Origin: Ascidiella aspersa
Lineage: Eukaryota
Direction of reading: 5' to 3'
Assembly: GCA_963924565.1 (NCBI GenBank)
Contig: OZ004612.1
Location: 2,232,001 to 2,296,000, forward strand
DNA length: 64,000 nt
The notes beneath the pieces were generated by a model. The model did no database searches. It was not told where the DNA came from and was given only the letters and a program-made list of their open reading frames with translations. Position 1 is the first letter of the stretch, and each line of letters starts with the position of its first letter. The position numbers and the translations under genes were made by a program. Below, piece after piece: positions 1 through 61,078 of this stretch.

Positions 1-1100
1 AGTTGGTTTTCTAGATTCTCATCGAAACGAGGTTGTTGTGGGATGCCAATTGTTTTCATTTTCATTTGATTGTAGATCGTATTATCGCCACAAACAAAAC
101 ATATTTTAGTTAAAATATCGCCCAAGTGGTAACCGTTTTTAAGATCAATATCCCGTCCAAGATATTTAAGCATTTCAGAAACAGGTTTAATCAGCTCAGT
201 ATCCCAGGGTTTGTTCGGTGTAGCTGACCTACCAAGTGGGAACTTGCAAGCAAAAGTAACCATTCCATCAAACGAAATGCCACGAGGTGTGTGCGCATCA
301 AAGAACCAGCCCTTACCATTATTTTCCTCGGGATCATTAATGAAAGGCAACGAAACGTGAGGTACTAGTGTTTCACCAAAGTTTACAACCACAACTTGAA
401 ACATCACAGACACCCAACGGAAATATTCCAGTATATCGTCATAATCTGAACGATTTTGAACACCTTCTTCCAACAAATAGATGTGCTCGAAATCTGAATA
501 AGGAGTGATTTCATTTCTAGCAAGTGATCCCATTCCAACCAAAGCATATTTACAAGGAGCTGGACCTGTAGCTTCCACACAAAACTCCATTATATCTGCC
601 ATGAGCCACTTGTATTTTTCTGTGATGATGTTTTGCAAACTCTCAATCAGACTAGCTCTACGTTGATCGGTTTGTGCAATTGAAATTGCTTTTAATGCAA
701 TATCCTTTATCCAACAACGAAAGTCTTTCACTTTAGTGGCAGATGCTTCAACTAGTTGCTTCAAACTGTCCACACTGGTGTCATGGCTGCCAGCAAGTTG
801 AAGAACACGCGAACAAAGCTCATCGAGATCTTTCTCAACCTCAGCAACGTTGTCAGGTATTCTCACAACAGCTGCATTTAACAACACGGCGCTGCGAATG
901 AGAGATATTTTCTTGTCTCTACCCTCGGGAAATTCATCAGCTATTTCGTGATATGCCCGGCCGAGTTGATGGATAACTTTGGCGGATTGTTTTACATCAC
1001 GTTCCTTTCCGTTTGCGTAACATAGTGACTTTAATTCCTTTGCAAGTTCATAAGTTTTAACTTTGTAAATGCTAGCTTTATTATCTGAGCACCCTTGCAT
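1..1100 (-). CDS. NTase-TPR family copy 1; 5' part only (N-terminus and nucleotidyltransferase domain), continues beyond the left window edge
   Basis: ATG at 1100-1098 reads MQGCSDNKASIYKVKTYELAKELKSLCYANG...YALVGMGSLARNEITPYSDFEHIYLL, collinear with copies 2-6. Absent from the ORF track, presumably because its stop lies outside the window. Confidence 0.85.
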   Translation of the reverse strand, partial: MQGCSDNKASIYKVKTYELAKELKSLCYANGKERDVKQSAKVIHQLGRAYHEIADEFPEGRDKKISLIRSAVLLNAAVVRIPDNVAEVEKDLDELCSRVLQLAGSHDTSVDSLKQLVEASATKVKDFRCWIKDIALKAISIAQTDQRRASLIESLQNIITEKYKWLMADIMEFCVEATGPAPCKYALVGMGSLARNEITPYSDFEHIYLLEEGVQNRSDYDDILEYFRWVSVMFQVVVVNFGETLVPHVSLPFINDPEENNGKGWFFDAHTPRGISFDGMVTFACKFPLGRSATPNKPWDTELIKPVSEMLKYLGRDIDLKNGYHLGDILTKICFVCGDNTIYNQMKMKTIGIPQQPRFDENLENQ

Positions 1101-2930
1101 ATTACAACTGATTGTAAATTTCTAAAAAAAGCAAGTAAAGTTGTAAAATGCAGGTTAGTCTTGTTATCTACCGATTAAATGCATTTCAGATCTAAAAAGT
1201 ACGACTTCTAAATTGCAAGCAATGAAGTTCTATTAACTATAATTCAGTCTGCATTGAAGCAACTCAATATTAGGCTTAACCAATTCAGGTGGGCTGGCTG
1301 TGACGCGACAATAACCGGATGTGACGCGACAATAACCGGCCGTGACGCAGTGAATAAATATGAGCCTAGCCATTGTTTGTCGAAGCGAGCAACAAGCAAA
1401 GGTAAAATACACAACTATTTATTAGTTTGATAAATAAATGTGTTTAAATACGTTAAATGTAATTTCTTGTGTGATAAAACTTAGAAAATAAAGCTAAATG
1501 TCAATTTCAAAGATTATCAGACTGCTTGTTATATTTGAAAGTAAATTGTGACCCAGTGGTTACTTGGTTAAAATAAACATGACCTAACTTAACCAATTTT
1601 AGGTAATTTGATTTTGTAATTGTCACCTTTTGAGTTGAAACACCTGAATTAATTCACATGTGCAAATGTGGATATTTTGTATTGGTAATAATTTTTAGCT
1701 CGAACTAAACCAGCTTTATGGTCATTTGTTTGATATATAGATATATATGCACACATTGAACTTGTATTTAAGCTGTTTGCGACATGATGGTGTTTAGCAC
1801 TTTTTTTCGTTTTTTTATGCGGCAATTTCGGGAAAACAAATTTTAACAAATTTGTTTTCTGTTCTCGTTTAACCAAATTGCTGAAATTAGTGGGTCTTTA
1901 TCACCGCCTAGCGGACAAACATTTACTCAACATATTTTAAAATATCCAAGGATTATATTACAACTTGTTATATGAAGCCAATATGATATGCTGTAAATTA
2001 CGTAACACTTTTACCTTAAAATGGCTCAAAAATATTAAGGATCTTGATCGTTACAATGCAATGTGCGGTTTGGTCACATGGCTTGGGTTGAAATGAATTG
2101 TGTTTATTTAACATTTTACTCTAAAATAAAGCTATTTATCTAATTTTTTGCACCTAAAACGATTATCATATGTTGGGTATTTCTTATTTTTAGTTAAGGT
2201 TTTACTGAACTTAGCTTGTTATTTTTTTAACTTGGATTTTACTTAAACTTAGCTAAAAGCGCCTATAAACCACTGTAGCCTGATACACTCTAGTATTGGC
2301 CGTAGCTCTTAAACCACTCACGTGAAACCAACTTTTTATTGACAATTAATGTCGAAGCTTACAAATAACACAATAGCAGTTACACATGAGCACATTTTGA
2401 ACTTAATATTTTGCGGCTTGAGCTTTGTATAATGTTTAACTAGTTCGAGAAATATCAAGACCAGTGTATTACATCTAACTAAAACTTCCGTTATACTCCG
2501 CAGATTAACTGGCGTAAATTTAACTAGCTTAGAAATAAAAAATAACAATAAATTGAGTGATATGTCGCCCTATAATTTATTTGAAACTTGCGTAGGAGTT
2601 TCGTTTTACAAGGTTATGTAAGTTTCCTGCAGTTCACATTAATAGATCTTCACACACACACTTTAAAAACAGCAATTAATTAAATTCCTGCTACATTCAC
2701 TCGAAATTCACCTCAAGTCAATCAATCAGTTGCCAATCTAGCATTGCGTTCTTGTGGCTTCCAGCATGCTTTGGGCTGCAAAGAAGTTGTTGCAAAAATT
2801 TAACAAACCATGTTTATTTAAGCGTTTCTACAGCGGGCCTTGGTTGAAGAAAGAGTTGTAAGGGTAATTTAAGTGCAGAAAAACGCTAACTTTCATGTTG
2901 ACCTTTTGTTAAAATATTTGTTATTTTTGT

Positions 2931-3782
2931 TGCATGGCAGATATAGTTTTCGTTACATTGCATGGCAGATATAGTTTTCGTTAAATTGCATGGTAGATAT
3001 AGTTTTCGTTAAATTGCATGGCAGATATAGTTTTCGTTAAATTACATGGCAGATATAGTTTTCGTTACATTGCATGGCAGATATAGTTTTCGTTACATTG
3101 CACGGCAGATATAGTTTTCGTTAAATTACATGGCAGATATAGTTTTCTTTAAATTGCATGGCAGATATAGTTTTCGTTACATTGCATGGCAGATATAGTT
3201 TTCGTTACATTGCATGGCAGATATAGTTTTCGTTACATTGCATGGCAGATATAGTTTTCGTTAAATTACATGGCAGATATAGTTTTCGTTACATTGCATG
3301 GCAGATATAGTTTTCGTTACATTGCATGGCAGATATAGTTTTCGTTAAATTACATGGCAGATATAGTTTTCTTTAAATTGCATGGCAGATATAGTTTTCG
3401 TTACATTGCATGGCAGATATAGTTTTCGTTACATTGCATGGCAGATATAGTTTTCGTTACATTGCATGGCAGATATAGTTTTCGTTACATTACATGGCAG
3501 ATATAGTTTTCGTTACATTACATGGCAGATATAGTTTTCGTTAAATTACATGGCAGATATAGTTTTCTTTAAATTGCATGGCAGATATAGTTTTCGTTAC
3601 ATTGCATGGCAGATATAGTTTTCGTTACATTGCATGGCAGATATAGTTTTCGTTACATTGCATGGCAGATATAGTTTTCGTTACATTACATGGCAGATAT
3701 AGTTTTCGTTACATTACATGGCAGATATAGTTTTCGTTACATTACATGGCAGATATAGTTTACGTTATATTGCATGGCAGAT
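2931..3782. repeat. 28-bp minisatellite, about 30 copies (TGCATGGCAGATATAGTTTTCGTTACAT)
   Basis: Direct tandem periodicity with few variants (tgca/taca, taca/taaa, cgtt/cttt). Confidence 0.95.
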
Positions 3783-4049
3783 GTGTTCTCTAGATACATT
3801 GCTACTTATTTATACAGCGGATGTTTTCATTTGTACCAACATTTTGGTGTTGATTTGCTTTTATATACAATTTTATGCTTGATGTTTTTGGAAATTATTT
3901 AAAAACTTCAAATGAGAAATGTTCCTTCTAAAAGGCGGATTATGTGCTTACTTTGTTTGGTGGTTGATTATCATTATGCCTTGGTCGTTAGATATAAGGT
4001 TTTATTGACATTTTTTGGTTGTTATCGTTGGATATATTTATTTGCTGCG

Positions 4050-5170
4050 TTTTTTTTTAATTTTGACCTTTTTTTTTTGACATTTGTTAAGGAATTTTGT
4101 TCTTGTCTCTTTCGGTTGTTTAAATGAAGTTGTTCTTGTCTTCTATGATTGTTCAATTTTCTTTTTACATTTTGCTTGTTTGAAGGATTCTGTTTTGACT
4201 TTTCGTTATGGTCGGAAGAATATTGTTCTTGCTTTTTTAGTTATTTGAAGAATTTTGTTTTTTACTTTTTTTGGTTGTTTGAAGGATTTTGTTTTTACTA
4301 TTTTTGGCATTTTGTTTTTGTCTATTTTGGTTGTTTGAAACGATTTTGTTTAGCGTTTTTTATTGTATGAAGGAATTTGTTTTAACTTTTTTGGGTTGTT
4401 TACCTGCAATAATTTGTTTTTGTCTTTTTTGATTGTTTGAAGGATTTTGTTTTTACTTTTTTGGTTGTTTGAAGTATTTTGTTTTTGTCTTTTTTGGTGG
4501 TTGAATGAAATATTTTATTTTGAACATTTTGATTGAGGAAAAGATTTAGTTTTTATCTGACTTTTTTCGGTGGTCGAAGGATTCTGCTTGTGTCTTTTTT
4601 GATGGTTGGTTGAAGGATTTTGTTTTTACTATTTTTGGCATTTTGTTTTTGTCTATTTTGGTTGTTTGAAACGATTTTGTTTAGCGTTTTTTATTGTATG
4701 AGGGAATTTGTTTTAACTTTTTTGGGTTGTTTACCTGCAATATATATATATATTTTTTTTTGGGGTTGTTTGAAGGATTTTGTTTTTACTTTTTTCGTTG
4801 TTTAACTGCAATAATTTGTTTTTGTCTTTTTTGATTGTTTGAAGGATTTTGTTTTTACTTTTTTGGTTGTTTGGAGTATTTTGTTTTTGTCTTTTTTGGT
4901 GGTTGAATGCAATATTTTATTTTGAAGTTTTTGATTGAGGAAAAGATTTAGTTTTTATCTGACTTTTTTCGGTGGTCGAAGGATTCTGTTTGTGTCTTTT
5001 TTGATGGTTGGTTGAAGAATTGTTGATGTGTTTTTGTTCTTTGACCGATTTTGTTTTGCATTTTATGGTTGTTTGAAGGATTTTACTTTCTGATTGTTTG
5101 AAAGATTTTGTTCTTGTTTTTTTAAGTGTGTGAATAATTATTTAGTTTTTGTTGTTGTTGGAAATATTTT
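4050..5170. repeat. Degenerate T-rich tandem repeat (TTGAAGGATTTTGTTTT core), related to the 63040-64000 satellite
   Basis: Recurrent ~30-37 bp subunits with larger internal duplications (e.g. ~4270-4410 vs ~4610-4740). Confidence 0.8.
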
Positions 5171-5498: not shown

Positions 5499-6515
5499 CT
5501 GTCATGTTGGCTGGTTATAAGTGTCATGTTGGCAGGTGGTCGGTGTCATGTTGGCAGGCGGTCGGTGTGGTCGGTGTCATGTTGGCTGGTGGTGGCATGT
5601 TTTTTATGTGCAGGTGACATGGACATAAGTTATTTGATTATAAAGTTGGCCGAGGTGGGTTGTGCGTCATTGGTTATATAGGTAGTCGGTGTCATGTTGG
5701 CAGGTGGTCGGTGTGGTCGGTGTCATGTTGGCTGGCGGTTAGTGTCATGTTGGCAGGTGGTAGGTGTGGTCGGTGTCATGTTGGCTGCTTATAAGTGTCA
5801 TGTTGGCAGGTGGTAGGTGTGGTCGGTGTCATGTTGGCTGGTGGTGGCATGTTTTTTTATGTGCAGGTGACATGGACATAAGTTATTTGATTATAAAGTT
5901 GGCCGAGGTGGGTTGTGCGTCATTGGTTATATAGGTAGTCGGTGTCATGTTGACAGGTGGTCGGTGTGGTCGGTGTCATGTTGGCTGGCGGTTAGTGTCA
6001 TGTTGGCTTGTGTTCGGTGTCATGTTGGCAGGTGGTCGGTGTCATGTTGGCAGGCGGTCGGTGTGGTCGGTGTCATGTTGGCAGGTGGTCGGTGTCATGT
6101 TGGCTGGTGGTTAGGGTCATGTTGGCAGGTGGTCGGTGTCATGTTGGCAGGTGATCGGTGTCATGTTGGCAGGTGGTCGGTGTCATGTTGTCTGGTGGTC
6201 GGTGTCATGTTGGCTTGTGGCTGTTGGTCGCTGTTAGCAGGTAGTGGTCTCTCAATGCCATGTTAGTTTCATTTTGGCCGATTGCCAGTGTCATGTCATA
6301 TTTGAAGTGCCATGTTAGCAATTTATCGGTGGCATTTAAGCAGATTTCCGGTGTCATGTTGGCAGGTAACCAGTGTCATGTTGGCAAGTGGTGCTGCTGT
6401 CATGTTGGCAAGTGGTTCTTCTGTCCTGTTGGCAAGTGGTTCTGCTGTCATGTTGGCAAGTGGTGCTGCTGTCACGTTGGCAGTTGGCCAGTGTCCTGTT
6501 TGAGAAATGTTGGCA
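5499..6515. repeat. 22-bp minisatellite (GTGTCATGTTGGCAGGTGGTCG) with a duplicated ~100-bp spacer and 24-bp variants at the right end
   Basis: TGTCATGTTGGC core repeated throughout; the spacer at ~5590-5690 recurs at ~5845-5940. Confidence 0.9.
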
Positions 6516-11610: not shown

Positions 11611-14600
11611 TCAATGATTAAAAATAAGCTCGGCAAATTGTATCATTTTGTTGCATTCTTTAATTGCCCCACTGGCCGAAGGATGGTCGATTTGTCTCCA
11701 CAACTTGATTGCTGTTTTCGAACTCTGCATTGCTTTGTCAGGTAGCTTCATCTGCAAATAACATCCACTGATTCTCAAGTGACAATCTGCAAAACACATT
11801 GCTACTTCTTGATCGGGTTTCGACGTCGAATGAAGTTTGATTCCTTGTTCGAAGCATTTCACTGCTTTTTCACACTTGTTAAGTTGTTGATACGAACAAC
11901 CGACATAATAAAACAAAACAAATTGATCTTCTAATGGAACTAGTTTTATATATTTTTGCCATTTTTTAAAACAAAAAACAACTTGCTCAGGTTTGTTAAA
12001 TTCAAAGCTGCATCCAATGAGTTGCCTATAACATTTTCCAATCATAACATCTCTCACTACAGTTTGATGAAAACCTACAAGCATTCCAAGGAAAGTTTCC
12101 AGTGTATTATAAGCTTCATCGTATCGATTAAGTTTGTAGAGACAAACTCCAGCGTTTAATTGCGCATTTGCAACTAACATCATGAAGTCATGTCCCGGAT
12201 GTCCATCACATATGGAGATTACTTCTTTAAAATTATCTAACTTTAATTTGTTGTTATCATTATTCATTGCAATACACATATACATATCAGCTCTGACAAG
12301 AACTTTGCGTCGCTGAAAATGTTTACTTGAGGGGTAGAGCTCATAAGCTTCCTTGTACTAATCACTTGCAAGTAGAAAGTTTTTCTTTATTCGGTGGATT
12401 TTAGCCCAGAGCCGTTTACATTCAGCAGAGAGATAATATTTGTTGTTTGGAATATACTGTTTACTCTTTGAAATATTTTCCGCCATTTTAATTGCCTTTT
12501 CAGCTTCTGTACAGTTTTCCATAGCGATGTAAGTTTCACCAAGTTCTACCAACGCAACTGCTGTGTCGTGATCTGAAGTTTCATCGAAAGCCTTTTCACG
12601 ACATTGAAGTAGATATTTCTTGCCATATTCAATGCTTTCTTTATATTTACCAATTCCATTATAGTATCGTGAAACATGTTGTTGTGCACCTTCTGAAACA
12701 TTGTCATTAAGTACAAGGTTAAGCATGTTACCAGCCTTGTCAAATAAACCTCCATAAACATACACTCCGAACAAATAACGTTGGACTTTTTGCCTAACCA
12801 TATCTGTGCTGTCTGAATGCAAAGCTTTTTGGTAACAATTAATTGCATTCAAGTTCAATTCAAGCTTATCGTAACAACGTCCCATGTCACATAAAATTGC
12901 AGCCCGCATTGGATCATTTTCTTCCATAAAATCTAAAGCATGTTGAAAGCAAATTAAGGTGGTTTTATGCTGATTGAGTTGATTGTAACAAAAGCCTTCC
13001 ACATACGTTATGTTTGCTTTTGCTTTTTTTGACTGAAATATATTTTTACTTTTGCATTTTTTTATGATCTTAATTGCTTCGTTATACAAACGTAAAGACA
13101 TAAGTGAAAATATTCCACGAATCCAAGTTGATTTTTTTGCTTCAGACTGCTTGTTGGTGAACGTTTGCAATGTGGAAGCTAAAGAGAAAAATTCAACAAT
13201 TCTTGACTTTCCGAAAACTTCCAGCAACAAATCATGAAAAGGTTCGAATCTTTTGTCAAGATAATCGCACTGGCTGGAGTATTTGAAGTAAACCCGCAAC
13301 CTTACTTCACAGGCGAAAGTAAGTGCGAACATAAAATCATCCGATTGTTGCTGTGATATTCGACTTGGAGTCAATTCCCGCAGAATGTCGAAAGAGGACG
13401 ACGATTTGCAATTATATCGTCTACCAAGTGCTGCTATAAACAAAGTGACGCTTCGAAATACGACGCTTTTGATGTTTACTGAATTTCCAATATACATCAA
13501 AGTCAAGCATTCATCTATGTTAAATTTGTCAGTATCCTCCTTTAGTTGTTTTTCTAAATTCTTATCGAAACGAGGTTGTTGTAAGATGTCTATTGTTTTC
13601 TTTTTCATTTGATCGTAGATTGCATCATCGCCACAAACAAAGCATATTTTAATTAAAATATCGCCCAAGTGGTAACCGTTTTGAAGGTCAATATCCCGTC
13701 CAAGATATTCAAGCATTTCAGAAACAGGTTTGATCAGCTCAGTATCCCAGGGTTTGTTCTTTGTTGCTGACCTACCAAGTGGGAACTTGCAAGCAAAAGT
13801 TACCATTCCATCAAACGAAATGCCACGAGGTGTGTGCGCATCAAAGAACCAACCTTTACCATTATTTTCCTCGGGATCATTAATGAAAGGCAACGAAACG
13901 TGAGGTATTAGGGTTTCACCAAAGTTTACAACCACAACTTGAAACATCACAGACACCCAACGGAAATATTCCAGTATATCTTCATAATCTGAACGATTTT
14001 GAACACCTTCTTCCAACAAATAGATGTGCTCGAAATCTGAATAAGGAGTGATTTCATTTCTAGCAAGTGATCCTATTCCAACCAAAGCATATTTACAAGG
14101 AGCTGGATCTGTAGCTTCCACACAAAACTCCATTATATCTGCCATGAGCCACTTGTATTTTTCTGTGATGATTTTTTGTAAACTTTCTATCAGACTAGCT
14201 CTACGTTGATCGGTTTCTGCAAGTGAAATTGCTTTTAACGCAATATCCTTTATCCAACACCGAAAGTCTTTCACTTTAGTGACAGATGCTTCAACCAGTT
14301 GCTTCAAACTGTCCACATTGGTGTCATGGCTGCCAGAAAGTTGAAGAACACGCGAACAAAGTTTATCGAGATCTTTCTCAACTTCAGCAACGTTGTCAGG
14401 TTTCCTCACAACAGCTGCATTTAACAACACGGCGCTGCGAATGAGAGATATTTTCTTGTCTCTACCGTCGGGTAATTCATCAGCTATTTCGTGATATGCC
14501 CGGCCGAGTTGATGGATAACTTTGGCGGATTGTTTTACATCACGTTCCTTTTCGTTTGCGTAACATAATGACTTCAATTCCTTTGCAAGTTCAAAAGTTT

Positions 14601-14643
14601 TGGCTTTGTAAATGCTAGCTTTATTATCTGAGCACCCTTGCAT
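11611..14643 (-). pseudogene. NTase-TPR family copy 2; full length (~1010 codons) but with one in-frame TAG at 12360-12358 (could give a 761-aa truncated protein)
   Basis: ORFs 12358..14643 and 11611..12285 are in the same frame; LASD*YKEAYELYP aligns with RASELYKEAYELYP in paralogs (TTG>TAG). Confidence 0.85.
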
Positions 14644-15102
14644 GTTACAACTGATTGTAAATTTCTAAAAAAACAAGTAAAGTTGTAAAATGCAAGTTAA
14701 TCTTTTGTTATTTACCGATTAAATGCACTTCAGATCTAAAAAGTATGACTTCTAAATTATAAGCAACCAAAGTACTACTGACTGTGCTTTAGCCTACATT
14801 GTAACTACAGCACTACGTTTGGCCTAAAATAGAAATACTGGTAGGCTGGTTATGGCGCGACAAAAAACAATTGTTACAGATGAATACATCTAAAGGCTGA
14901 GCTATTGTTTGTGAAAATCGAGCACCGAGCGAACATAATTCCAATGGTTTTTATTTCAAACTAGAACTAAGACTAATAAATGCCAGATATCAAATGAAAT
15001 AAAAACATATATCAATGGAATGCTGGTCTTTATGCGACAACCAAGATTATTCGCGCGAATCCGGCAACGACATGAGCTATATTTTCTTTTGTAGCCTCAT
15101 TT

Positions 15103-15267
15103 ATCAGCTATTTCGTGATATGCCCGGCCGAGTTGATGGATAACTTTGGCGGATTGTTTTACATCACGTTCCTTTCCATTGTTGCAAAACATAATGACTT
15201 TAATTCCTTTGCAAGTTCAAGTTTTGATTTTGTAAATAGTAGCCTTATTACATAAGCAGCCTTGCAT
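15103..15267 (-). pseudogene. Relic of an MQGC-type 5' end of the NTase-TPR gene
   Basis: Near-identical DNA to ~14480-14643, frameshifted and truncated after the HEIAD-encoding segment. Confidence 0.8.
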
Positions 15268-20508: not shown

Positions 20509-23500
20509 TTATTTTTTTATGATTGAAAACTCGGCCATTTTTATAGTACCGTAGCACTGGTTAATTGCATCACTCGCCTTAGGATGGTCAGTTTTTCTCC
20601 ACAACTTGATTGCTGTTTTCGAACTCTGCATTGCTTTGTCATATAACTTCATCTGCAAATAACATTCACCAATTCGCTTGTGACAATCTGCAACAAACAT
20701 CGCTACTTCTTTATGGGGATCCGACGTCGAATGAAGTTCGATTTCTTGTTCAAAGCATTTGACCGCATTTTTAAACTGGGCAAGTTTCTGATGCGAACAA
20801 CCACCATAATACGGCAAATATGTTTTAGTGAAAAGTTGTTTTATATATTCTTTCCCTTTTTCGAAATATTCAACAACCGGCTCATGTTTGTTCAGTATAA
20901 AGCTACAACTAATGAGCTCCCTATAACATCTTCCAATCATGCCATCTCTCTCCACAGTTTTATGAAAACCTAAAAACATTCCCAGTGACGTTTTCAGTGG
21001 TTTATAAGCTTCGTCATATCTTTTAAGTTGATTGAGACAAAATCCAGCGTTATATTGCGCATTTGCAACTAACCGCATAAAGTTATGTCCCTGATGTCCA
21101 TCACATGTGGAGATTACTTCTTCATGCTGATCTAACGCTAATTTGTAATCATCGTTATTACCTTTATGCATTCCAATACACCTAAATATTTCAGCTTTGA
21201 CACGAACTTTGCGTCGCTGAAATATTTTAGTTAAGGGGTAGAGCTCATAAGCTTCCTTCAACAATTCACTTGCTCGTAGAAAGTTTACCTTTTTTGCGTG
21301 AATTTCAGCCTGGATCGTTTTGCATTCGGCAGGGAGATGATATTTGTTCATTGGAACGTAATGTTTACTCTTAGAAATATTTTCCGCCATTATAACTGCC
21401 TCTTCAGCTTCTGTGTAGTTATTCATCTCGATGTAAGTTTGAGCAAGATTTAGCAACGCAATTGCTGTGTCGTGATCTGAAGTTTCATCGAAGGCCTTTT
21501 CACGACATTGAAGTAAATATTTCTCGCCGTATTCAATGCTTTCTTTGTATTTACCAATATAACAGTAATATCGAGCAATATATCGTTGTGCGTATTCCGA
21601 AACATTGTCGTTTAAAACAAGATCAATCATGTCACCGGCCTTCTCTAACCAACCTTCATACACGTACAACCCAAACAACTGGCTTTGTACTTTTCGTTTT
21701 TCCACATCTGTCCTGCTGGAATGCAAAGCTTTTTCGTAGTATGAAATCGCATCCAAGTTCATTCCAAGTTCATTGTAGCAACTTCCCATCATAAACAGCG
21801 TTTTAGCCCGCATTGGATCGTAGTCTTCCATGAGATCTAAGGAAAGTTGGAAACACTTTAAAGCGATTTCATGCAGATCAACTTTAAAGTGACAAAAGCC
21901 TTCGACATAGACCATTTCTGCTTTAGTTTCTTCAAACTCGAATATATTTTCGTTTATGCACTTTTGAATAACTTTAATTGCTTCGTTATACAAACGTAAA
22001 GACACAAGCGCAAATAAAACGCGAAACCAAATTGTCTCTTTTGATTCATATTGCTTGATGGTAAACATTTGCAAACTGGAAACTGAAGAGAAAAATTCAA
22101 CAATTTTTGATTTTCCAAATGCTTCAAGTAACAAATCATGAAAAGGTTCGAATCTTGCGTCAAGATAATCGCACTGGCGGGAGTATTTGAAGTAAACCCG
22201 CAACCTAACTTCACAGGCGAAAGCAAGTGCGAACATAAAATCATTTGATTGTTGCTGTGATATTTGTCTTGGGAGTCAATTCACGCAGAATATCGAAAGA
22301 AGACGACGATTTGCAATTATGTCGTCTACCAAGTGCTACTATAAACAAAGTGACGCTTCGAAATACGACGTTTTTGATGTTTACTGAGTTTTCAATACAC
22401 ATCAAATTCAAGCATTTAATAATGTTGAATTTGTCAGTATCCTCCTTAAGTTGGTTTTCTAGATTCTCATCAAAACGAGGTTGTTGTAAGATGTCAATTG
22501 TTTTTATCTTCATTTGATCGTAGATTGCATCATCGCCACAAACAAAGCATATTTTAGTTAAAATATCGCCCAAGTGGTAACCGTTTTTAAGGTCAATATC
22601 CCGTCCAAGATATCCAAGCATTTCAGAAACAGGTTTGATCAGCTCAGTATCCCAGGGTTTGTTTAATGTAGCTGACCTACCAAGTGGGAACTTGCAAGCA
22701 TGTGGCATCATTCCATCAAACGAAATGCCACGAGGTGTGTGCGCATCAAAGAACCAATCTTGGTCGATTTCCTGATCATTAAGGAAAGGCAAAACTACGC
22801 TTGGTATTATGGTTTCACCAAAGTTTACAACCACAACTTGAAACATCACAGACACCCAACGGAAATATTCAAGTATATCATCATAATCTGAACGATTTTG
22901 AACACCTTCTGCCAACAAATAGATGTGCTCGAAATCTGAATAAGGAGTGATTTCATTTCTAGCAAGTGATCCCATTCCAACCAAAGCATATTTACAAGGA
23001 GCTGGACCTGTAGCTTCCACACAAAACTCCATTATATCTGCCATGAGCCATTTGTATTTTTCTGTGATTATTTTTTGCAAACTCTCTATCAGGCTAGCTC
23101 TACGTTGATCGGTTTCTGCAAGTGAAATTGCTTTTAACGCAATATCCTTTATCCAACACCGAAAGTCTTTCACTTTAGTGACAGATGCTTCAACCAGTAG
23201 CTTCAAACTGTCCACACTGGTGTCATGGCTGCCAGAAAGTTGAAGAACACGCGAACAAAGCTCATCGAGATCTTTCTCAACCTCAGCAACGTTGTCAGGT
23301 TTCCTCACAACAGCTGCATTTAACAACACGGCGCTGCGAATGAGAGATATTTTCTTGTCTCTACCGTCGGGTAATTCATCAGCTATTTCGTGATATGCCC
23401 GGCCGAGTTGATGGATAACTTTGGCGGATTGTTTTACATCACGTTCCTTTCCGTTTGCGTAACACAATGACTTTAATTTCTTCGCAAGTTCAAAAGTTTT

Positions 23501-23542
23501 AGCTTTGTAAATACTAGCTTTATTATCTGAGCACCCTTCCAT
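20509..23542 (-). pseudogene. NTase-TPR family copy 3; split by a 1-bp insertion at ~22271-22273 (real frameshift or assembly error)
   Basis: CTTGGGAGTCAAT here vs CTTGGAGTCAAT in copies 2, 5 and 6; removing one base joins the 433-aa and 575-aa ORFs via ELTPRQISQQQSNDFMFALAF. Confidence 0.85.
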
Positions 23543-40803: not shown

Positions 40804-42860
40804 TATATAGAGTTAGCTCCACCAGGCAACATATCAATAAATATAAATCGCTCTTCTGGTGTAAACGAAGTATAAACCGACGTTTCGGCAGCAGATACCA
40901 GCTGACCTCATCAGGGTTAAAATTAAAACGAGAGTGCGTTAGCCATCTTATATACTAAGAAGTAAAAAATTGTAAAAACGTAGATTAAAATTAATAATTC
41001 TAGACGTCGCTGAAGTATGCGATAAGCTGTGACGCGCCGGAGTCATCCGGTGCAGTACTGCGCCGTCGGACAACGGGCGTTTATCAGCTATTGCGTATAG
41101 CTACAACGACGAGTAGATTGCCGGATACCATGAATCCTTTTTATTCATGGTGTTAGGAGATTTGTCAATCCGGAATGATTCAATGAACCGTCTTTTGTAA
41201 TAGTGCGGTTCCCAGTCTAGAATTTTACAGTTATCCCAATCAATTCCGTGTCGGAGTTCAACCGCATGATCTGCCAGAGCTGACCGGGATGCCTTTTCGT
41301 GGCGGACATCACGCATGTGTTCGAGTTTCCTGGTATGAAAGGAACGTTTAGTTTCCCCTATGTATGTTGCTGAACAACCTCCACAGGGAATCTCATAAAC
41401 TGCCCCTTGACGTTTTTCTGGTTTGACTGGATCTTTAGTTGAAGGTAAAATATTTCCAATTTTTCTGGCTGGTTTAAAAGCTGTAGAGATGTGGTGGCCC
41501 TTCAAAATGCGTTTTAATTTTTCTCCCAGACCTGGAATGTAGGGAATAATGGCCAGACCTTTAGATTCTGGTTTAGATGTTAAATGGTTGGTTTTGTTAC
41601 GAGGTTTGAACAACCAGTCGGGGTATCCGTTTAATCTCATGGCCTTCTTAACATGTTTAATTTCGTTGCCTTCGTCCTGATAGTTACTGCAAAGTTTTGA
41701 AGCTCGGTGTAGCAGGGAACTCACAACCGAGCGTTTGTGTTGTAAAGGGTGGTCTGATCTGAAATTCAAGTAGCGATCTGAATGTGTTAATTTTCTAAAT
41801 ACCTTGGAAGATAATTTAACTGACCGGTTACGAGTGATTAATGAATCCAAGAATGAAATTGAGCATTTGTTCTCTGTTTCCATAGTGAATTTAATGGTAG
41901 GTTCCAAGCTGTTCAAGTGGTCCAGGAACTGCTGTATCAAGTTTGTTTTTATTATGACAAACGTATCATCTACGTATCTTCGCCACATTCGCGGGGGGGT
42001 ATGGAATGAATTCATGGCCCGTTGTTCGATGTCCTCCATAACCAAGTTTGCCACAGTTACTGAAACCGGTGATCCCATAGCTGTTCCAAATATCTGTTTG
42101 TAATGTTTTCCTTTGAATTTAAGGTATGTAGATTCTAGGCATATAGTTAACCCTTCTAGTATATCATTAATATTAAACTTAGTCCTGTTTTCCAGTGTGT
42201 TGTCTTGGTTAAGACGTTCTTTAGCTACTTGTATAGCCAGGTTAGCGGGGACATTGGTGAACAGGGAGGTAACGTCGAACGAGACCATGCTTTCATCTTC
42301 TTTTATTTGAAAATTTGTAATTTCTTCAACGAAACCAATCGAGTTTTTAACATGATATTCTGTTTGACCTAAAAGAGGGGATAAAATTAAAGAAATACGT
42401 TTAGCTAAGTTATACGTGGGGGACCCAATGAATGAAACAATAGGCCTAAGCGGGATTTCCGGTTTGTGTATTTTGGGTAACCCATAGAGTAATGGTGATG
42501 TAGCATCAGAACTTTTGAGAAGGTTCCATTCATAGTTGTTCACCTTCTCTTCTTTCTTCAGCCGTTGCATGTACCTGTTAAGTTGTTTTTCTATACCTTT
42601 AGTGGGATTAACCGTAACAGGACAGTAAGTGTCCCTGTCTGCCAACATATTGTGAAGTTTATTATCGTACTCAGATTTATCCATAACAACTGTAACATTA
42701 CCTTTGTCCGCCCGTTGAATTACCAAACCTGTGTTATTTTTGAGCTCTTTTAAGGCTTGTTTTTCGTCCGGTTGGAGGTTGGGTTCGATTGTTTTGTGGG
42801 ATTTTAAACCTGAAATAACTTTACCTCTTACCAGATTAGCTTCACCGGGGGGTAATCTCC
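40804..42860 (-). mobile_element. 5'-truncated Penelope-like retroelement
   Basis: RT plus GIY-YIG ORF followed by a 3' region containing a hammerhead; both flanks resume the host duplication unit seen uninterrupted at ~16440-16530. Confidence 0.92.
40874..40918 (-). ncRNA. Minimal type I hammerhead ribozyme in the Penelope 3' repeat
   Basis: Minus strand reads AACC-CUGAUGA-GGUCAGC(UGGUAUCU)GCUGCC-GAAAC-GUC-GGUU: full core, stem I AACC/GGUU, palindromic ACGU stem III. Confidence 0.8.
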
Positions 42861-42903
42861 AGGGATCACCAAGCCATAGCCCGGTACCAGACAAATCAAA
42901 CAT
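41101..42903 (-). CDS. Penelope-like reverse transcriptase with GIY-YIG endonuclease (N-terminally truncated; first ~15 codons are host flank)
   Basis: ADKGN, YGLPKIHKP..PLRPI, SFDVTSLFT, GTAMGSP, RYVDDTF and GAVYEIPCGGCSATYIGET motifs. Confidence 0.92.
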   Translation of the reverse strand: MFDLSGTGLWLGDPWRLPPGEANLVRGKVISGLKSHKTIEPNLQPDEKQALKELKNNTGLVIQRADKGNVTVVMDKSEYDNKLHNMLADRDTYCPVTVNPTKGIEKQLNRYMQRLKKEEKVNNYEWNLLKSSDATSPLLYGLPKIHKPEIPLRPIVSFIGSPTYNLAKRISLILSPLLGQTEYHVKNSIGFVEEITNFQIKEDESMVSFDVTSLFTNVPANLAIQVAKERLNQDNTLENRTKFNINDILEGLTICLESTYLKFKGKHYKQIFGTAMGSPVSVTVANLVMEDIEQRAMNSFHTPPRMWRRYVDDTFVIIKTNLIQQFLDHLNSLEPTIKFTMETENKCSISFLDSLITRNRSVKLSSKVFRKLTHSDRYLNFRSDHPLQHKRSVVSSLLHRASKLCSNYQDEGNEIKHVKKAMRLNGYPDWLFKPRNKTNHLTSKPESKGLAIIPYIPGLGEKLKRILKGHHISTAFKPARKIGNILPSTKDPVKPEKRQGAVYEIPCGGCSATYIGETKRSFHTRKLEHMRDVRHEKASRSALADHAVELRHGIDWDNCKILDWEPHYYKRRFIESFRIDKSPNTMNKKDSWYPAIYSSL

Positions 42904-46436: not shown

Positions 46437-49400
46437 TTATTTTTTTGATTTCAAACTACGTTTTGCAAGTTTTTTTATTTTGTAGCATTCTTTAATTTTC
46501 TCACTCGCAAAAGGATGGTTGATTTTTCTGCACAACTTGATTGCTGTTTTCGAACTCTGCATTGCTTTGTCATGTAGCTCCATCTTCAAATAACATTCAC
46601 CGATTCTCAAGTGACAACTTGCAGTAAGCATCGCTAACTCTTTATCGGGATCCGACGTCGAATGAAGTTCGATTCCTTGTTCAAAGCATTTCACTGCATT
46701 TTCAAACTTGGGAAGTTGTTGAAACGAAAAGCCGACATCATAAAATAAATATTTTCGTTTTTCTAATGGAAGCTGTTTTATATATTCTTGTCCTTTTTCG
46801 AAATAATACACAACCTTCTTATGTTTCTTTAGTTTAAAGCTACAGCTAATGAGTTCCACGAAACAACTTTGAATCATGACATCTCTCTTGGTAGTTTTAT
46901 GAAAACCAAAAAACATTCCCAGAGAAGTTTCCAGTGTGTCATAAGCTTCCTCGTATCGATTACGATCAAGTTGGTTGAGACAAATTCCAGCGTTTAATTT
47001 CGCATTTGCAACTAACCGCACAAAGACATGTCCCTGATGTCCATCGCATATGGAGATTACTTCTTTATACTGATCTAATGCTAATTCGTACTTATTGTTG
47101 ATTTCATTATTTACTCCAACACACAAATACATATTAGCTCTGACACGAACTTTGCTTTGCTGAAATTGTTTACTTGAGGGGTAGAGCTCATAAGCTTCCT
47201 TATACAATTCACTTGCTCGTAGAAAATTTTCCTTTTTTAGGTGGATTTTAGCCCGGAACCATTTGCATACAGCAGGGAGATGATATTTGTCGTCTGGAAC
47301 AAAATGTTTACTCTTAGAGATATTTTCCGCGCTTTCAATCGCTATTTCAGCTTCTGTGTAGTTTTCCATTGCGATGTAAGTTTTACCAAGATCCAGCAAC
47401 GCAACTGCTGTGTCGTGATCTGAAGTTTCATCGAAGGCCTTTTCACAACATTGATGTAGATATTTTTTGCCATATTTAATGCTTTGTTTGTAATCACCAA
47501 TTCCACGGTAATATCGAGACAAAAGTAGCTTTGCAGTTTTCGAAACATTGTCGTTTAGAACAAGGTAAATCATGTTACCGACCTTCTCAAACAAGACCTC
47601 TTCTAAATATAATCCCAATAACTTACATTTAACATCTCGCATATCCATATCTGTGCTGCTGGAATGCAAAGCTTTTTCGTAGCATTTAATCGCATCTAAG
47701 TTCATTCCAAGAACATTGTAACAATGTCCTATAATGGACAACGTTACAGGTCGATTTTGATCTTGGTTTCCCAAACAATCCAATGAACGTTGAAAGCACT
47801 CTAAAGCGGTTTCATACTGATTAACTTTAAAGTGGCACATACCTTCATATGATTTGCATGCTTTTTCTTCTTGGAATGCAAATATATTTTTGCTTCTAGC
47901 ATTTTTCATGACGTTCATTGCTTCGTTATACAAACGTAAAGACATAAGCGAAACTACAACACGAAACCAAGATGATTCTTTTAGTTCAGATTGACTGATG
48001 GTGAACATTTGCAAAGTAGAAGCTGAAGAGAAAAATGCAACAATACTTGATTTTCCAAATTCTTCGAGTAACAAATCAGGAAAAGGTTCGAATCTTGCGT
48101 CAAGATGATCACACTGGCGGGAGTATTTGAAGTAAACCCGCAACCTAACTTCACAGGCGAAAGCAAGTGCGAACATAAAATCATCCGATTGTTGCTGTGA
48201 TATTTGGCTTGGAGTCAATTCTCGCAGAATATCGAAAGAAGACGACGATTTGCATATATGTCTTCTACCAAGTGCTGCTATAAACAAAGTGACGCTTCGA
48301 AATACGACGCTTTTGATGTTTACTGAGTTTTCATTATGTATCAAAGCCAAGCATTCATCTGTGTTGAATTTGTCAGTATCTTCCTTTAGTTGTTTTTCTA
48401 GATTCTCATCGCAACGAGGTTGTTGTAAGAAGTCAACGGTTTTCATCTTCATTTGATCGTAGATTGCATCTTCGCCACAAACAAAGCATATTTTAGTTAA
48501 AATATTACCCAAGTGGTAACCGTTCTTAAAGTCAATATCCCGTCCAAGATATTTAGTCATTTCAGAAACAGGTTTGATCAGCTCAGTATCCCAGGGTTTG
48601 TTCGGTGTAGCTGACCTACCAAGTGGGAACTTGCAAGCAAAAGTAACCATTCCATCAAACGAAATGCCACGAGGTGTGTGCGCATCAAAGAACCAGCCCT
48701 TACCATTATTTTCCTCGGGATCATTAATGAAAGGCAACGAAACGTGAGGTATTATGGTTTCACCAAAATTTACAACCACAACTTGAAACATCACAGACAC
48801 CCAACGGAAATATTCAAGTATATCGTCATAATCTGAACGATTTTGAACACCCATTCCAACCAAAGCATATTTACAAGGAGCTGGACCTGTAGCTTCCACA
48901 CAAAACTCCATTATATCTGCCATGAGCCATTTGTATTTTTCTGTGATGATTGTATCAGACTAGCTCTACGTTGATCGGATTCTGCAAGTGAAATTGCTTT
49001 TAACGCAATGTCCTTTATCCAATGCCTAAAGTCTTTTATTTTAGTGACAGATGCTTTCACCAGTTCCTTCAAACTGTCCACACTGGTTTCATGGCTGCCA
49101 GCAAGTTGAAGAACACGCGAACAAAGCTCATCGAGATCTTTCTTAATCTCAGCAACGTTGCCAGGATTTCTCACAATAGCTGCTTTTAACAAAACGGCGC
49201 TTCGAATATATTTTCTTGTCGCGTCCTTTAGTTAGTCGTGCAATTTTTTGATACGCAAGGCCGAGTTTGTGGATGATTTTTGCAGATTTCTGTGGCTCTT
49301 TCTCTTTTCCATTCGCATAGCAGCATTCTTCTGACTTTAAATATTTTGCTAAAGGTTCAGTAAAGCTTGTCAAATATTCAACAGACACAATGTTTCCCAT
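46437..49400 (-). pseudogene. NTase-TPR family copy 5 (MGN-type start); two 5' frameshifts and an in-frame 66-bp deletion of the catalytic motif; residual 828-aa ORF 46437..48923
   Basis: 5-bp deletion at ~49207 and net 13-bp deletion at ~48950 relative to paralogs; YALVGMG|VQNRSDY junction at ~48851. Confidence 0.88.
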
Positions 49401-49560: not shown

Positions 49561-49564
<4 letters not shown>

Positions 49565-58033: not shown

Positions 58034-61000
58034 TTATTTTTTTGGTTTCAAGGCACGTCTTGCAAGTTTTATTGTTTTGTCGCATTCTTTAATTTTTTCA
58101 CTCGCCAAAGGATCGTCGATTTTTCTCCACAACTTGATTGCTGTTTTCGAACTCTGCATTGCTTTGTCATGTAGCTCCATCTTCAAATAACATTCACCGA
58201 TTCTCAAGTGACAACTTGCAGTAAGCATCGCTAACTCTTTATCGGGGTCCGACGTCGAATGAAGTTCGATTCCTTGTTCAAAGCATTTCACTGCATTTTC
58301 AAACTTGGGAAGTTGTTGAAACGAAAAGCCGACATCATAAAATAAATATTTTCGTTTTTCTAATGGAAGCTGTTTTATATATTCTTGTCCTTTTTCGAAA
58401 TAATACACAACCTTCTTATGTTTCTTTAGTTTAAAGCTACAGCTAATGAGTTCCACGAAACAAATTTGAATCATGACATCTTCTCTCTTGGTAGTTTTAT
58501 GAAAACCAAAAAACATTCCCAGAGAAGTTTCCAGTGTGTCATAAGCTTCCTCGTATCGATTACGATCAAGTTGGTTGAGACAAATTCCAGCGTTTAATTT
58601 CGCATTTGCAACTAACCGCACAAAGACATGTCCCTGATGTCCATCGCATATGGAGATTACTTCTTTATACTGATCTAATGCTAATTCGTACTTATTGTTG
58701 ATTTCATTATTTACTCCAACACACAAATACATTTCAGCTCTGACACGAACTTTGCTTTGCTGAAATTGTTTACTTGAGGGGTAGAGCTCATAAGCTTCCT
58801 TATACAATTCACTTGCTCGTAGAAAATTTTCCTTTTTTAGGTGGATTTTAGCCCGGAACCATTTGCATACAGCAGGGAGATGATATTTGTCGTCTGGAAC
58901 AAAATGCTTACTCTTCGAAATTTTTTCCGCCATTTTAATGACCTTTTCAGCTTCTGTGTAGTTTTCCATATCGATGTAAATTTCACCAAGATCTAGCAAC
59001 GCATTTGCTGTGTCGTGATCTGAAGTTTCATCGAAGGCCTTTTCACGACATTGAAGTAGATGTTTCTCGCCGTATTTAATGCTTTCTTTGTATTTGCCAA
59101 TTCTACGGTAATATTGAGCAACATAGCGCTGTGTACCTTCCAAAACATTGTCTTTTAAAACAAACTTAACAATGTTACCGGCCTTCTCAAACAAATGTTC
59201 TTCAACATATAATTTCAGCAACACACATTGACCTTCTCGTACATCCATATCTGTGCCGCTTGAATGAAAAGCTTGTTCATAACAATTGATGGCATATAAG
59301 TTCATTCCACGCTCGCAGTAACAAATTCCCATCAAAAACAACAACGTGTAACGCTGCATGTGATTATTTTCTTCCATCAAATCTAACCCACGTTGAAAGC
59401 ACTTCAAAGCGGGTTCCAACAAATTAACTTTGTAATAACACAAACCTTCGAGGGCGAAACTTGGGCCTTTATTATTTACAAACTTAAATATATTTCTGCT
59501 TCTGGATTTTTTTATGACATTAATTGCTTCGTTATACAAACGTAAAGACATAAGCAAAAATACAACACGAAACCAATTTGATTGGTTTGCTTCAGATTGC
59601 TTGATGGTGAACATTTGCAAATTAGAAGTTAAAGAGAAAAATTCAACAATTCTTGATTTTCCAAATACTTCGAGCAACAAATCATGAAAAGGTTCGAATC
59701 TTGCGTCAAGATAATCGCACTGTCCGGAGTATTTAAAGTAAACCCGCAACCTAACTTCACAGGCGAAAGCAAGTGCGAACATAAAATCATCCGATTGTTG
59801 CTGTGATATTTGGCTTGGAGTCAATTCCCGCAGAATATCGAAAGAAGACGACGATTTACAATTGTATCGTCTACCAAGTGCTGCTATAAACAAAGTGACG
59901 CTTCGAAATACAACGCTTTTGATGTTTACTGAGTCTTCATTAAGCATTAAAGTCAAGCATTTATTGATGTTAAATTTGTCAGTATCCACCTTAAGTTGTT
60001 TTTCCAGATTCTCGTCATAACGAGGTTGTTGTAAAATGTCAATTGTCTCCATCTTCATTTGATTGTAGATTGCATCATCGCCACAAACAAAGCATATTTT
60101 AGTTAAAATATCGCCCAAGTGGTAACCGTTTTTAAGGTCAATATCACGTCCAAGATATTCAAGCATTTCAGAAACAGGTTTGACCAGCTCAGTATCCCAG
60201 GGTTTGTTCGGTGTAGCTGACCTACCAAGTGGGAACTTGCAAGCATGTGGCATCATTCCATCAAATGAAATGCCACGAGGTGTGTGCGCATCAAAGAACC
60301 AATCTTGGTCGTTTTCCTGATCATTAATGAAAGGCAAAGCGACGCTTGGTATTATGGTTTCACCAAACTTTACAACCACGACTTGAAACATCACAGACAC
60401 CCAACGGAAATATTCCAGTATATCATTATAATCTGAACGATTTTGAACACCTTCTTCCAACAAATAGATGTGCTCGAAATCTGAATAAGGAGTGATTTCA
60501 TTTCTAGCAAGTGATCCCATTCCAACCAAAGCATATTTACAAGGAGCTGGACCTGTAGCTTCCACACAAAACTCCATTACATCTGCCATGAGCCACTTGT
60601 ATTTTTCTGTAATGGTTTTTTGTAAACTCTCTATCAGACTAGCTCTACGTTGATAGGTTTCTGCAAGTGAAATTGCTTTTAACGCAATATCCTTTATCCA
60701 ACACCGAAAGTCTTTCACTTTAGTGACAGATGCTTCAACCAGTTGCTTCAAACTGTCCACACTGGTGTCATGGCTGCCAGCAAGTTGAAGAACATGCGAA
60801 CAAAGCTCATCGAGATCTTTCTCAACCTCAGCAACGTTGTCAGGTTTCCTCACAACAGCTGCTTTTAACAACGTGGCGCTTCGAATGTAGGATATTTTCT
60901 TGTCGCGTCGTTTTGATATTCGTGCAATTATTTTATACGCTAGGCCTAGTCTGTGGATGACTTTAGCAGATGTCTTGGGGTCTCTTTCTTTTCCGTTTGC

Positions 61001-61078
61001 AAAGCATTGTGACTTTAACTCTTTTGCTAAAGGTTCAGTAAAGCTTGTCAAATATTCAACAGACACAATGTTTCCCAT
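58034..61078 (-). CDS. NTase-TPR family copy 6; intact 1014 aa, MGNIVS N-terminus
   Basis: Uninterrupted 3045-bp ORF; catalytic motif at ~60474-60517; TPR-like C-terminal half. Confidence 0.92.
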   Translation of the reverse strand: MGNIVSVEYLTSFTEPLAKELKSQCFANGKERDPKTSAKVIHRLGLAYKIIARISKRRDKKISYIRSATLLKAAVVRKPDNVAEVEKDLDELCSHVLQLAGSHDTSVDSLKQLVEASVTKVKDFRCWIKDIALKAISLAETYQRRASLIESLQKTITEKYKWLMADVMEFCVEATGPAPCKYALVGMGSLARNEITPYSDFEHIYLLEEGVQNRSDYNDILEYFRWVSVMFQVVVVKFGETIIPSVALPFINDQENDQDWFFDAHTPRGISFDGMMPHACKFPLGRSATPNKPWDTELVKPVSEMLEYLGRDIDLKNGYHLGDILTKICFVCGDDAIYNQMKMETIDILQQPRYDENLEKQLKVDTDKFNINKCLTLMLNEDSVNIKSVVFRSVTLFIAALGRRYNCKSSSSFDILRELTPSQISQQQSDDFMFALAFACEVRLRVYFKYSGQCDYLDARFEPFHDLLLEVFGKSRIVEFFSLTSNLQMFTIKQSEANQSNWFRVVFLLMSLRLYNEAINVIKKSRSRNIFKFVNNKGPSFALEGLCYYKVNLLEPALKCFQRGLDLMEENNHMQRYTLLFLMGICYCERGMNLYAINCYEQAFHSSGTDMDVREGQCVLLKLYVEEHLFEKAGNIVKFVLKDNVLEGTQRYVAQYYRRIGKYKESIKYGEKHLLQCREKAFDETSDHDTANALLDLGEIYIDMENYTEAEKVIKMAEKISKSKHFVPDDKYHLPAVCKWFRAKIHLKKENFLRASELYKEAYELYPSSKQFQQSKVRVRAEMYLCVGVNNEINNKYELALDQYKEVISICDGHQGHVFVRLVANAKLNAGICLNQLDRNRYEEAYDTLETSLGMFFGFHKTTKREDVMIQICFVELISCSFKLKKHKKVVYYFEKGQEYIKQLPLEKRKYLFYDVGFSFQQLPKFENAVKCFEQGIELHSTSDPDKELAMLTASCHLRIGECYLKMELHDKAMQSSKTAIKLWRKIDDPLASEKIKECDKTIKLARRALKPKK

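Follow-up and report, generated by a model that had tools for sequence, protein, structure and literature searches.

The characterised enzymes closest to the proteins described here are GlnE, GlnD and DrrA, each of which attaches a nucleoside monophosphate (NMP) to a tyrosine of its substrate protein, respectively glutamine synthetase, PII and Rab1 (PMC3710099, PMC12409994). A survey of HEPN domains lists GlnD, GlnE and DUF294_C as bacterial (PMC3710099), and a 2025 review gives FICD and SelO as the only eukaryotic enzymes that attach adenosine monophosphate (AMP) to proteins, the AMPylases, and cites the adenylyltransferase fold from bacteria only, in GlnE and the Legionella effector DrrA (PMC12409994). 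A DUF294 domain followed by tetratricopeptide repeats (TPRs) has been described, at domain level only, as the NEX2 family of Neochlamydia (Domman et al. 2014, PMC4209131). Here a stretch of 64,000 nucleotides of the Ascidiella aspersa genome, referred to as the window (contig OZ004612.1; G000:C6:2232001-2296000 in our numbering), was analysed and found to hold a tandem array of six genes in which a nucleotidyltransferase (NTase) module, modelled with the GlnE/DrrA-type fold, is joined to TPRs. What is new here is the occurrence of such an enzyme in animals, where it is fused to TPRs and has undergone massive expansion.

A full-text literature search found no paper on the animal family. The preliminary description of the window knew of no characterised animal protein with this architecture, and none was found here; the DUF294-TPR layout as such has a precedent, being already published as NEX2 (PMC4209131) and present in several intracellular bacteria. 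The same description had surmised that uncharacterised homologues might be in databases, and animal homologues were indeed found there as uncharacterised proteins. With restrained confidence, we favour reading the window as six members of a large, lineage-specifically expanded animal family of TPR-guided, partner-specific protein NMPylases evolving by birth and death. The fold, motif conservation, repeat architecture, copy number, taxon distribution and selection pattern carry this reading, and from them we infer catalytic activity, protein as the substrate, TPR-directed specificity and a conflict role.

The window belongs to a 33-Mb contig in an assembly of 308.6 Mb and 75 contigs, has a GC content of 31-41%, and no runs of N were found in its 64 kb. 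The copies were located by tblastn against the window, with the 1016-aa product of the open reading frame (ORF) at 34649-37699 (copy 4) as query, and the match spans are given in brackets.

1-1100, minus strand (match 3-1100): copy 1, represented by its N-terminal 366 codons with the NTase motif; the remainder precedes the window start
11611-14643, minus strand (match 11632-14643): copy 2, full-length frame with the NTase motif kept and a single in-frame TAG
20509-23542, minus strand (match 20533-23542): copy 3, NTase motif kept, frames of 433 aa and 575 aa
34649-37699, minus strand (match 34649-37699): copy 4, intact gene, 1016 aa, N-terminus MQGCS
36200-37699, minus strand: enzyme module of copy 4, residues 1-500, matching the DrrA/GlnE AMPylation domain
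37085-37138, minus strand: catalytic motif of copy 4, residues 188-205 (G-S-x10-D-x-E)
34652-36199, minus strand: TPR solenoid of copy 4, residues 501-1016, with 25 predicted helices in about 12 hairpins
46437-49361, minus strand (match 46458-49361): copy 5, 828-codon open frame, catalytic motif gone
58034-61078, minus strand (match 58034-61078): copy 6, intact gene, 1014 aa, N-terminus MGNIVSV
60473-60526, minus strand: catalytic motif of copy 6

Fold and active site of the enzyme module

In copies 2, 3, 4 and 6 Pfam DUF294 (PF03445) is matched at about residues 146-219 with 28.4-34.6 bits, the gathering threshold being 21 bits, and 54 matches in the genome lie above this cut-off; SidM_N and DUF294_C are matched weakly in the window copies. 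The Pfam scan of the window copies contained no HD or ACT domain and no NB-ARC/NACHT NTPase or other switch domain, and neither F-box nor OTU was matched in copy 4 or 6 at E up to 1. No membership of an NCBIfam family was found, the GlnD models PRK00227 and PRK03381 reaching 14-16 bits against cut-offs of 631-799, and PADLOC gave no known defence-system model and one marginal match of 16 bits. The neighbours in a protein language model were bacterial DUF294 clusters. A single-sequence search of the PDB returned nothing meaningful; a profile search returned a weak match to DrrA, in which the family motif was correctly aligned on the DrrA GSLAKAQATEYSDLD catalytic loop, and the Lys/Arg conserved in the helical domain on their DrrA counterparts. 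The assignment therefore rests on fold comparison.

An AlphaFold2 model of residues 1-505, built from a 50-sequence alignment of this N-terminal region, had a mean predicted local distance difference test (pLDDT) score of 90.8 and a predicted template modelling (pTM) score of 0.91. In copy 4 the module consists of N-terminal helical hairpins, a Pol-beta-type NTase core and a HEPN-like helical domain. Foldseek against the PDB gave four significant chains, all with probability 1.00, these being two of 3k7d (GlnE C-terminal domain), 6yx5_B (DrrA) and 1v4a (GlnE N-terminal domain), and the match after these entries had E above 0.03. In VIA-align, an independent all-against-all structural search, the DrrA chain 6yx5_B was superimposed on model residues 67-505 with Z 24.7 and a root-mean-square deviation of 3.7 Å over 320 of 339 residues, followed by both GlnE domains, 1v4a and 3k7d, at Z 20.1, and unrelated rows stayed below Z 10 (HEPN on residues 360-505, Z 8-10; TPR-like hairpins on residues 5-114). 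By this modelling the enzyme module has the GlnE/DrrA-type NTase fold, in agreement with the assignment made in the preliminary description. That description had also set the protein apart from cGAS, OAS and TENT enzymes; among the matches listed (best 50 rows in each of the two fold searches) there is none of these and no CD-NTase, and beyond GlnE and DrrA only aminoglycoside NTases turn up, weakly.

The fold searches bear directly on two alternative activities. The first, already raised as an option in the preliminary description, is a nucleotide second-messenger synthase of the cGAS/CD-NTase or OAS kind, in which the TPRs would be the sensor and a small nucleotide the signal. The protein lies within the Pol-beta NTase superfamily, and among animals oysters are cited as having Mab21/cGAS-type fusions of an NTase with TPRs (PMC8195603). 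The clear top folds are nevertheless the protein-modifying GlnE and DrrA only, with cGAS, OAS and CD-NTases missing from the listed matches, the attached HEPN-like domain is of the GlnE/DUF294_C type and the PADLOC match is marginal; we consider a second-messenger synthase very improbable, and a cGAS-like reading was rejected on the fold searches. The second is an enzyme that removes AMP or uridine monophosphate (UMP), like the deadenylylating N-terminal domain of GlnE or the removing activity of GlnD, or that works in both directions, and that would erase NMP marks, for example those of bacterial effectors. The deadenylylating N-domain (1v4a) fits exactly as well as the adenylylating C-domain, and marine hosts often harbour intracellular bacteria in which relatives occur. 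The best match is however the AMP-transferring domain of DrrA, a GlnD-type HD domain is missing from the Pfam scan and the direction of the reaction is not readable from the fold alone, so that a remover appears quite improbable.

The motif VG[M/I]GSLARNEITPYSDFE of the preliminary description is present in copies 1, 2, 3, 4 and 6 and is deleted in copy 5 by an in-frame loss of 22 codons. Its catalytic pair, given there as D-x-D, was misread and is D-x-E (G191-S192-x10-D203-F-E205 in the five copies), still within the Pol-beta NTase consensus. The helical-domain motifs NIK, SSFDI and RLR recur in the family consensus. Comparison of 54 enzyme domains, drawn from this genome, from Clavelina, Ciona and Branchiostoma and from eight bacterial proteins, shows residues G191, S192, T199, S202, D203, E205, E243, G274, D278, K286, G290, K392, R397, R449 and Y453 to be invariant or nearly so. 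Candidates for the third catalytic acid, whose lack would have spoken against the preliminary reading, are conserved: E243 and D278 are each kept in 53 of these domains, and E302 is kept in 50. The motif also varies little among another 40 paralogs of the genome, which share 37-90% identity across the N-terminal domain; the exceptions are the deep paralogs L035-L037 (motif glycine to Ala), L011 (S192P) and L029 (E205 missing). Modelled fold and conserved residues together suggest that the module is probably an active nucleotidyltransferase.

Family size, distribution and the state of the array

A genome-wide copy count, proposed in the preliminary description, was made with the N-terminal 500 residues and gave at least 91 matches, falling into about 80 distinct loci. 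About 51 of these lie at 0.72-2.66 Mb on the same contig, so that the window is a slice of a 2-Mb super-cluster, and about 45 loci keep open frames of at least 950 codons. In public databases 1595 protein clusters at 50% identity were matched with E ≤1e-3. Named animal relatives occur in Clavelina lepadiformis, Ciona intestinalis, three Branchiostoma species and the soft corals Xenia and Dendronephthya; their annotations read uncharacterised, 'TTC28', 'KLC1' or 'Protein-PII uridylyltransferase N-terminal domain-containing'. The models P0001 (Ciona) and P0121-P0123 (Branchiostoma) hold two or three NTase modules in 1300-3100 aa, and may be true multi-enzyme proteins or tandem genes fused by gene prediction.

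A scan of bacterial genomes with the family profile found no relative, because its patterns were too tunicate-specific. Relatives were then found by a looser scan with a degenerate motif and checked by tblastn and Pfam; they have the same NTase-then-TPR layout with 26-40% identity over the enzyme module, and their hosts are Parachlamydiaceae, Rhabdochlamydiaceae (including the complete chromosome of a Dictyostelium symbiont), Holosporaceae, Midichloriaceae and one gammaproteobacterial metagenome-assembled genome (MAG). On two chromosomes of this MAG there were ten catalytic-loop matches, 10/10 of which were confirmed as relatives by tblastn (L054, L061, L063, L071, L077, L078, L096 and L107 on OZ257147.1; L100 and L109 on OZ257148.1). 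The two loci scanned by Pfam are DUF294 proteins of more than 1000 aa, and the set is a bacterial lineage-specific expansion paralleling the animal one. Four proteins of 2000-2700 aa on JGI metagenome contigs of 11-22 kb (P0361, P0367, P0387 and P0389) begin with a DUF294/SidM_N-type NTase, followed by NB-ARC, DUF7779 and TPR_10/TPR_12. This is the layout of signal transduction ATPases with numerous domains (STAND), with the NTase in the effector position; the NTase-NB-ARC order was obtained by hmmscan for P0361 and P0389, and P0367 and P0387 have the same domain set in precomputed Pfam annotation.

Enzyme-domain trees join the tunicate-type sequences in a single clade with 100% support and a stem of 0.73-0.84, apart from the bacteria, and the metagenomic P0003, P0004, P0006 and P0260, found on gene-poor, eukaryote-like contigs, nest within it. 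The placing of the genome's copies in this clade together with the Clavelina and Ciona proteins, the nearest named matches and a trace of GH6 in the genome make it likely that the DNA is of tunicate origin. Because the trees leave the branching order of the amphioxus, coral and bacterial groups unresolved and a single animal clade was not rejected (approximately unbiased test, p 0.66), recent horizontal transfer from bacteria appears neither supported nor excluded. Bacterial contamination was rejected on genomic context.

Within the window the six paralogs, of about 1015 codons each, lie head to tail on the minus strand with starts at 1100, 14643, 23542, 37699, about 49361 and 61078. The start-to-start spacing of 8.9-14.2 kb bears out the 9-14 kb first reported. 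Only copies 4 and 6 are intact, the other four being broken or decaying: copy 1 has a frameshift near codon 889, beyond the window edge, the TAG of copy 2 is codon 762 (12358-12360), the two frames of copy 3 are separated by a frameshift near 22237-22275, and copy 5 has two N-terminal frameshifts besides the loss of its motif. Relics of further copies lie between the genes.

15010-15267, minus strand: relic, N-terminal residues 1-88, 49% identity
40332-40457, minus strand: relic, C-terminal 42 residues, 60% identity
49610-49819, minus strand: relic, N-terminal residues 1-74, 43% identity

DNA similarity between the units is 84-95% and spans the gene body with at most about 40-200 bp of flank; the intergenic DNA of the array has been turned over and contains satellites and one reverse-transcriptase ORF. 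Duplication, broken copies and relics together agree with the cluster turnover proposed at the outset. The genes had also been called intronless, which holds for the coding region, where it was shown; AG acceptor-like sites 25-45 nt upstream of the start codons hint at an intron in the 5′ untranslated region or at trans-splicing.

The reverse-transcriptase ORF (41101-42903, minus strand, 600 aa, RVT_1 with E 2e-8) lies between copies 4 and 5, a retroelement within the array. A satellite at 2930-3782 has a 28-bp unit in 30.5 copies at 95% identity, and a GT-rich minisatellite at 5500-6220 has a 22-bp unit nested in higher-order periods of 44-253 bp. T/G-rich tandem repeats with units of about 102 nt occur at 3931-5135 and 62861-64000, about 1.8-2.8 kb upstream of the starts of copy 1 and copy 6; the two blocks are 74% identical to each other and cause the strong GC/AT skew of their bins, and the listed 257-aa ORF with a TTG start at 63042-63815 falls within the second and is probably no gene. 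Copy 6 (start 61058-61078) and five of 40 fetched paralogs (L011, L020, L023, L024 and L040) begin with MGN-x-x-S, which resembles an N-myristoylation signal, and copy 4 and most others begin with MQGCS or MEGCS; the family may comprise both membrane-anchored and soluble proteins.

The whole of the stretch to which reads were mapped is covered by three DNA data sets and the locus is therefore no assembly artefact. Transcription was sampled on copy 4 with about 6% of one RNA run of the same species label; about six reads matched its N-terminal half at ≥96% identity, and in most of them the first mate fell on the plus strand, as expected of sense reads when a dUTP library is mapped to a minus-strand gene. 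Of the RNA reads mapped, nearly all went to 32 nt at 39131-39162 with a short palindrome (CCGAAAAT..ATTTTCGG), where the DNA contig sets reach a depth of about 90,000, most other bins lying between a few hundred and a few thousand. The reads there continue into unlike sequence and show 'goes back' joints of about 30 nt, and the 32 nt seem to belong to a short repeat, tandem or dispersed, that is highly abundant and transcribed.

TPR region, selection and proposed mechanism

About 500 aa of TPR-like repeats had been noted after the enzyme domain; Pfam TPR families cover about residues 545-990, and the full-length model (pLDDT 88.9, pTM 0.80) places 25 helices from 507 to 1015, forming about 12 TPR hairpins. 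Structural neighbours of this part are generic TPR solenoids, including those of O-GlcNAc transferase (OGT) and SPINDLY (SPY). Each window protein is thus modelled as a GlnE/DrrA-type nucleotidyltransferase, probably cytosolic, that is joined directly to a solenoid of about 12 TPRs.

Selection was assessed by crude counting of substitutions in 23 close paralogs, pairwise and by region, at an overall mean dS of 0.26, with the following dN/dS (omega).

N-terminal helices: 0.42
NTase core: 0.27
HEPN-like domain: 0.36
TPR region: 0.63

A tree-based count resembled the pairwise values, the TPR omega being 0.63-0.75 across both, which agrees with the earlier remark that the repeats diverge faster than the enzyme. 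By these counts the enzyme domain is under purifying selection, most clearly in its NTase core. Within the TPRs the A helices, the first of each hairpin, have 7.2 non-synonymous changes per site and the B helices, the second, 3.6 (Mann-Whitney p 3e-10), the synonymous changes are similar (1.8 and 1.55) and omega is 1.01 against 0.53. In a TPR superhelix the A helices line the concave, ligand-binding face. Since it is these helices that evolve faster, the pattern fits diversification of binding specificity.

The selection pattern also bears on whether the array has any present function, the alternative being a decaying or selfish repeat family, or bacterial or symbiont DNA mis-assembled into an animal genome. 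Four of the six copies are broken, relics lie between the genes, a reverse-transcriptase ORF sits within the array and RNA reads are very few. Against this the omega of the enzyme core is 0.27, the motif is near-invariant across paralogs 40-90% identical and about 45 loci have long open frames; the context is an AT-rich, gene-poor eukaryotic region of a 33-Mb contig covered by three DNA runs, and the tunicate-type clade stands with full support apart from all bacterial sequences. A lack of function is on this evidence extremely unlikely, and the family is almost certainly real and selected.

As GlnE, GlnD and DrrA all modify protein tyrosine, a TPR-guided protein NMPylase is proposed. The concave face of the TPRs, formed by the A helices, would bind a partner protein; D203 and E205, with E243 or D278 as the third conserved acid, would hold Mg-NTP, K392 and R397 of the HEPN-like helical domain would contact the phosphates, and AMP or another NMP would be transferred to a hydroxyl of the partner, most likely of a tyrosine. 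Repeated duplication, decay and A-helix diversification would give each paralog a different partner, and such a diversification of partners would fit a role in biological conflict, e.g. immunity or symbiont control. Argued by analogy with the characterised enzymes, protein NMPylation as the activity has about even chances; an immune or conflict role is plausible, though less likely than not.

The part played by the TPRs may be that of a substrate adaptor or of a ligand sensor that licenses the enzyme. OGT is one example of TPRs as a substrate adaptor. The TPRs of FICD likewise serve substrate choice (PMC12409994). The sensor role is suggested by the metagenomic NTase-NB-ARC-DUF7779-TPR relatives. 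Taken further, it gives a ligand-gated sensor-enzyme in which a microbial or danger ligand on the TPRs would lift autoinhibition of the NTase and a target would be AMPylated or UMPylated, as in a NOD-like receptor (NLR) lacking the NTPase switch. The placing of the NTase as N-terminal effector in those relatives, the diversifying A helices, the tandem birth-and-death evolution and the pTM of 0.80 of the full-length model, which suggests a defined domain arrangement, are all consistent with it. The Pfam scan of the window proteins gave, however, neither an NTPase nor any other switch domain, and in characterised TPR-enzyme fusions (FICD, PMC12409994; OGT, SPY) the TPRs select substrates. We regard ligand gating as rather unlikely.

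Several observations weigh against the TPR-guided NMPylase that we favour. Two thirds of the window copies (4/6) are broken, and the RNA reads are about six from a 6% sample of one run, for which paralogs could be the source. The raised omega of the TPRs could reflect relaxed constraint, gene conversion or repeat misalignment. A site-wise parsimony test for positive selection in the 23 paralogs gave eight codons with a nominal p <0.05; no codon reached 0.01 or stayed significant after correction, and contrasts are therefore claimed at the level of regions and helices only. We know of no member, animal or bacterial, for which an activity, substrate or partner is known, and to our knowledge Pfam DUF294 itself is without a characterised function.

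Some animals thus carry scores of intact genes with an adenylyltransferase fold, an intact catalytic motif and a fast-diversifying TPR surface, and the same enzyme-TPR layout is expanded in bacteria living within eukaryotic cells. Together these features suggest a class of animal AMPylases that has gone unstudied. Should its members be active, a third enzyme class would be added to animal AMPylation, invertebrate chordates would gain a new candidate family of immune or conflict proteins, and a host-side counterpart to bacterial AMPylating effectors would be at hand. More speculatively, and in this full form rather unlikely, this third animal class with the DrrA/GlnE fold, in tunicates, amphioxus and some cnidarians, would be a diversifying system of innate immunity or symbiont control, in which the TPRs of each paralog recognise a different microbial or danger protein and lead to NMPylation of it or of a host signalling target. 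If true, the system would mirror the AMPylating effectors injected into hosts by intracellular bacteria.

Comparison with known systems

With STAND/NLR-like NB-ARC-TPR proteins the window proteins share the C-terminal TPR_12/TPR_10, lineage-specific expansion and tandem birth and death, and some metagenomic proteins join this NTase to NB-ARC-TPR; the window proteins lack the NB-ARC/NACHT NTPase and hence are not STAND proteins. Bacterial DUF294/DUF294_C proteins are alike in DUF294, which is above the gathering threshold in motif-bearing window copies, and in DUF294_C, which is weak in copy 4 and above threshold in relatives. Typical bacterial members have N-terminal domains binding cyclic nucleoside monophosphates (cNMP) and CBS domains and are about 350-650 aa long. 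The cNMP-binding and CBS domains are not in the window proteins.

Closer in layout are NEX2 and the relatives in Parachlamydiaceae, Rhabdochlamydiaceae, Holosporaceae and Midichloriaceae, which have the DUF294 NTase, the helical domain and a C-terminal TPR_12/TPR_10 array, are 26-40% identical over the enzyme module and also form multi-copy families. The Neochlamydia protein P0308 has the order F-box-like, DUF294, DUF294_C, TPR of the NEX2 architecture. Bacterial members, which are presumed host-directed effectors, often add an N-terminal F-box, OTU, methyltransferase or ankyrin domain, whereas the window proteins are without these and fall in a separate, strongly supported clade.

FICD/HYPE and OGT are alike in principle, a TPR array picking the substrate for an attached transferase (FICD: PMC12409994), and OGT and SPY are structural neighbours of the window TPRs; the catalytic folds (FIC and GT-B) are unrelated, and FICD and OGT are single-copy conserved genes without expanded arrays. 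GlnE (1v4a, 3k7d) and GlnD share the NTase and the helical substrate-binding fold, with weak motif-level NCBIfam matches to GlnD, whereas the window proteins have no tandem NTase domains, HD or ACT and no link to nitrogen regulation. The closest whole-domain fold is that of DrrA/SidM of Legionella pneumophila (6yx5, 3nku), in which a nearly identical catalytic loop (GSLA...T.YSD.[DE]) is likewise followed by a HEPN-like helical domain in which one Lys and one Arg are conserved. Sequence identity to DrrA is about 13%, and the second acid is Glu in the window proteins and Asp in DrrA. DrrA is a secreted bacterial effector with guanine nucleotide exchange factor and phosphatidylinositol 4-phosphate-binding domains and no TPR, whereas the window proteins are animal, probably cytosolic, and joined to 12 TPRs.

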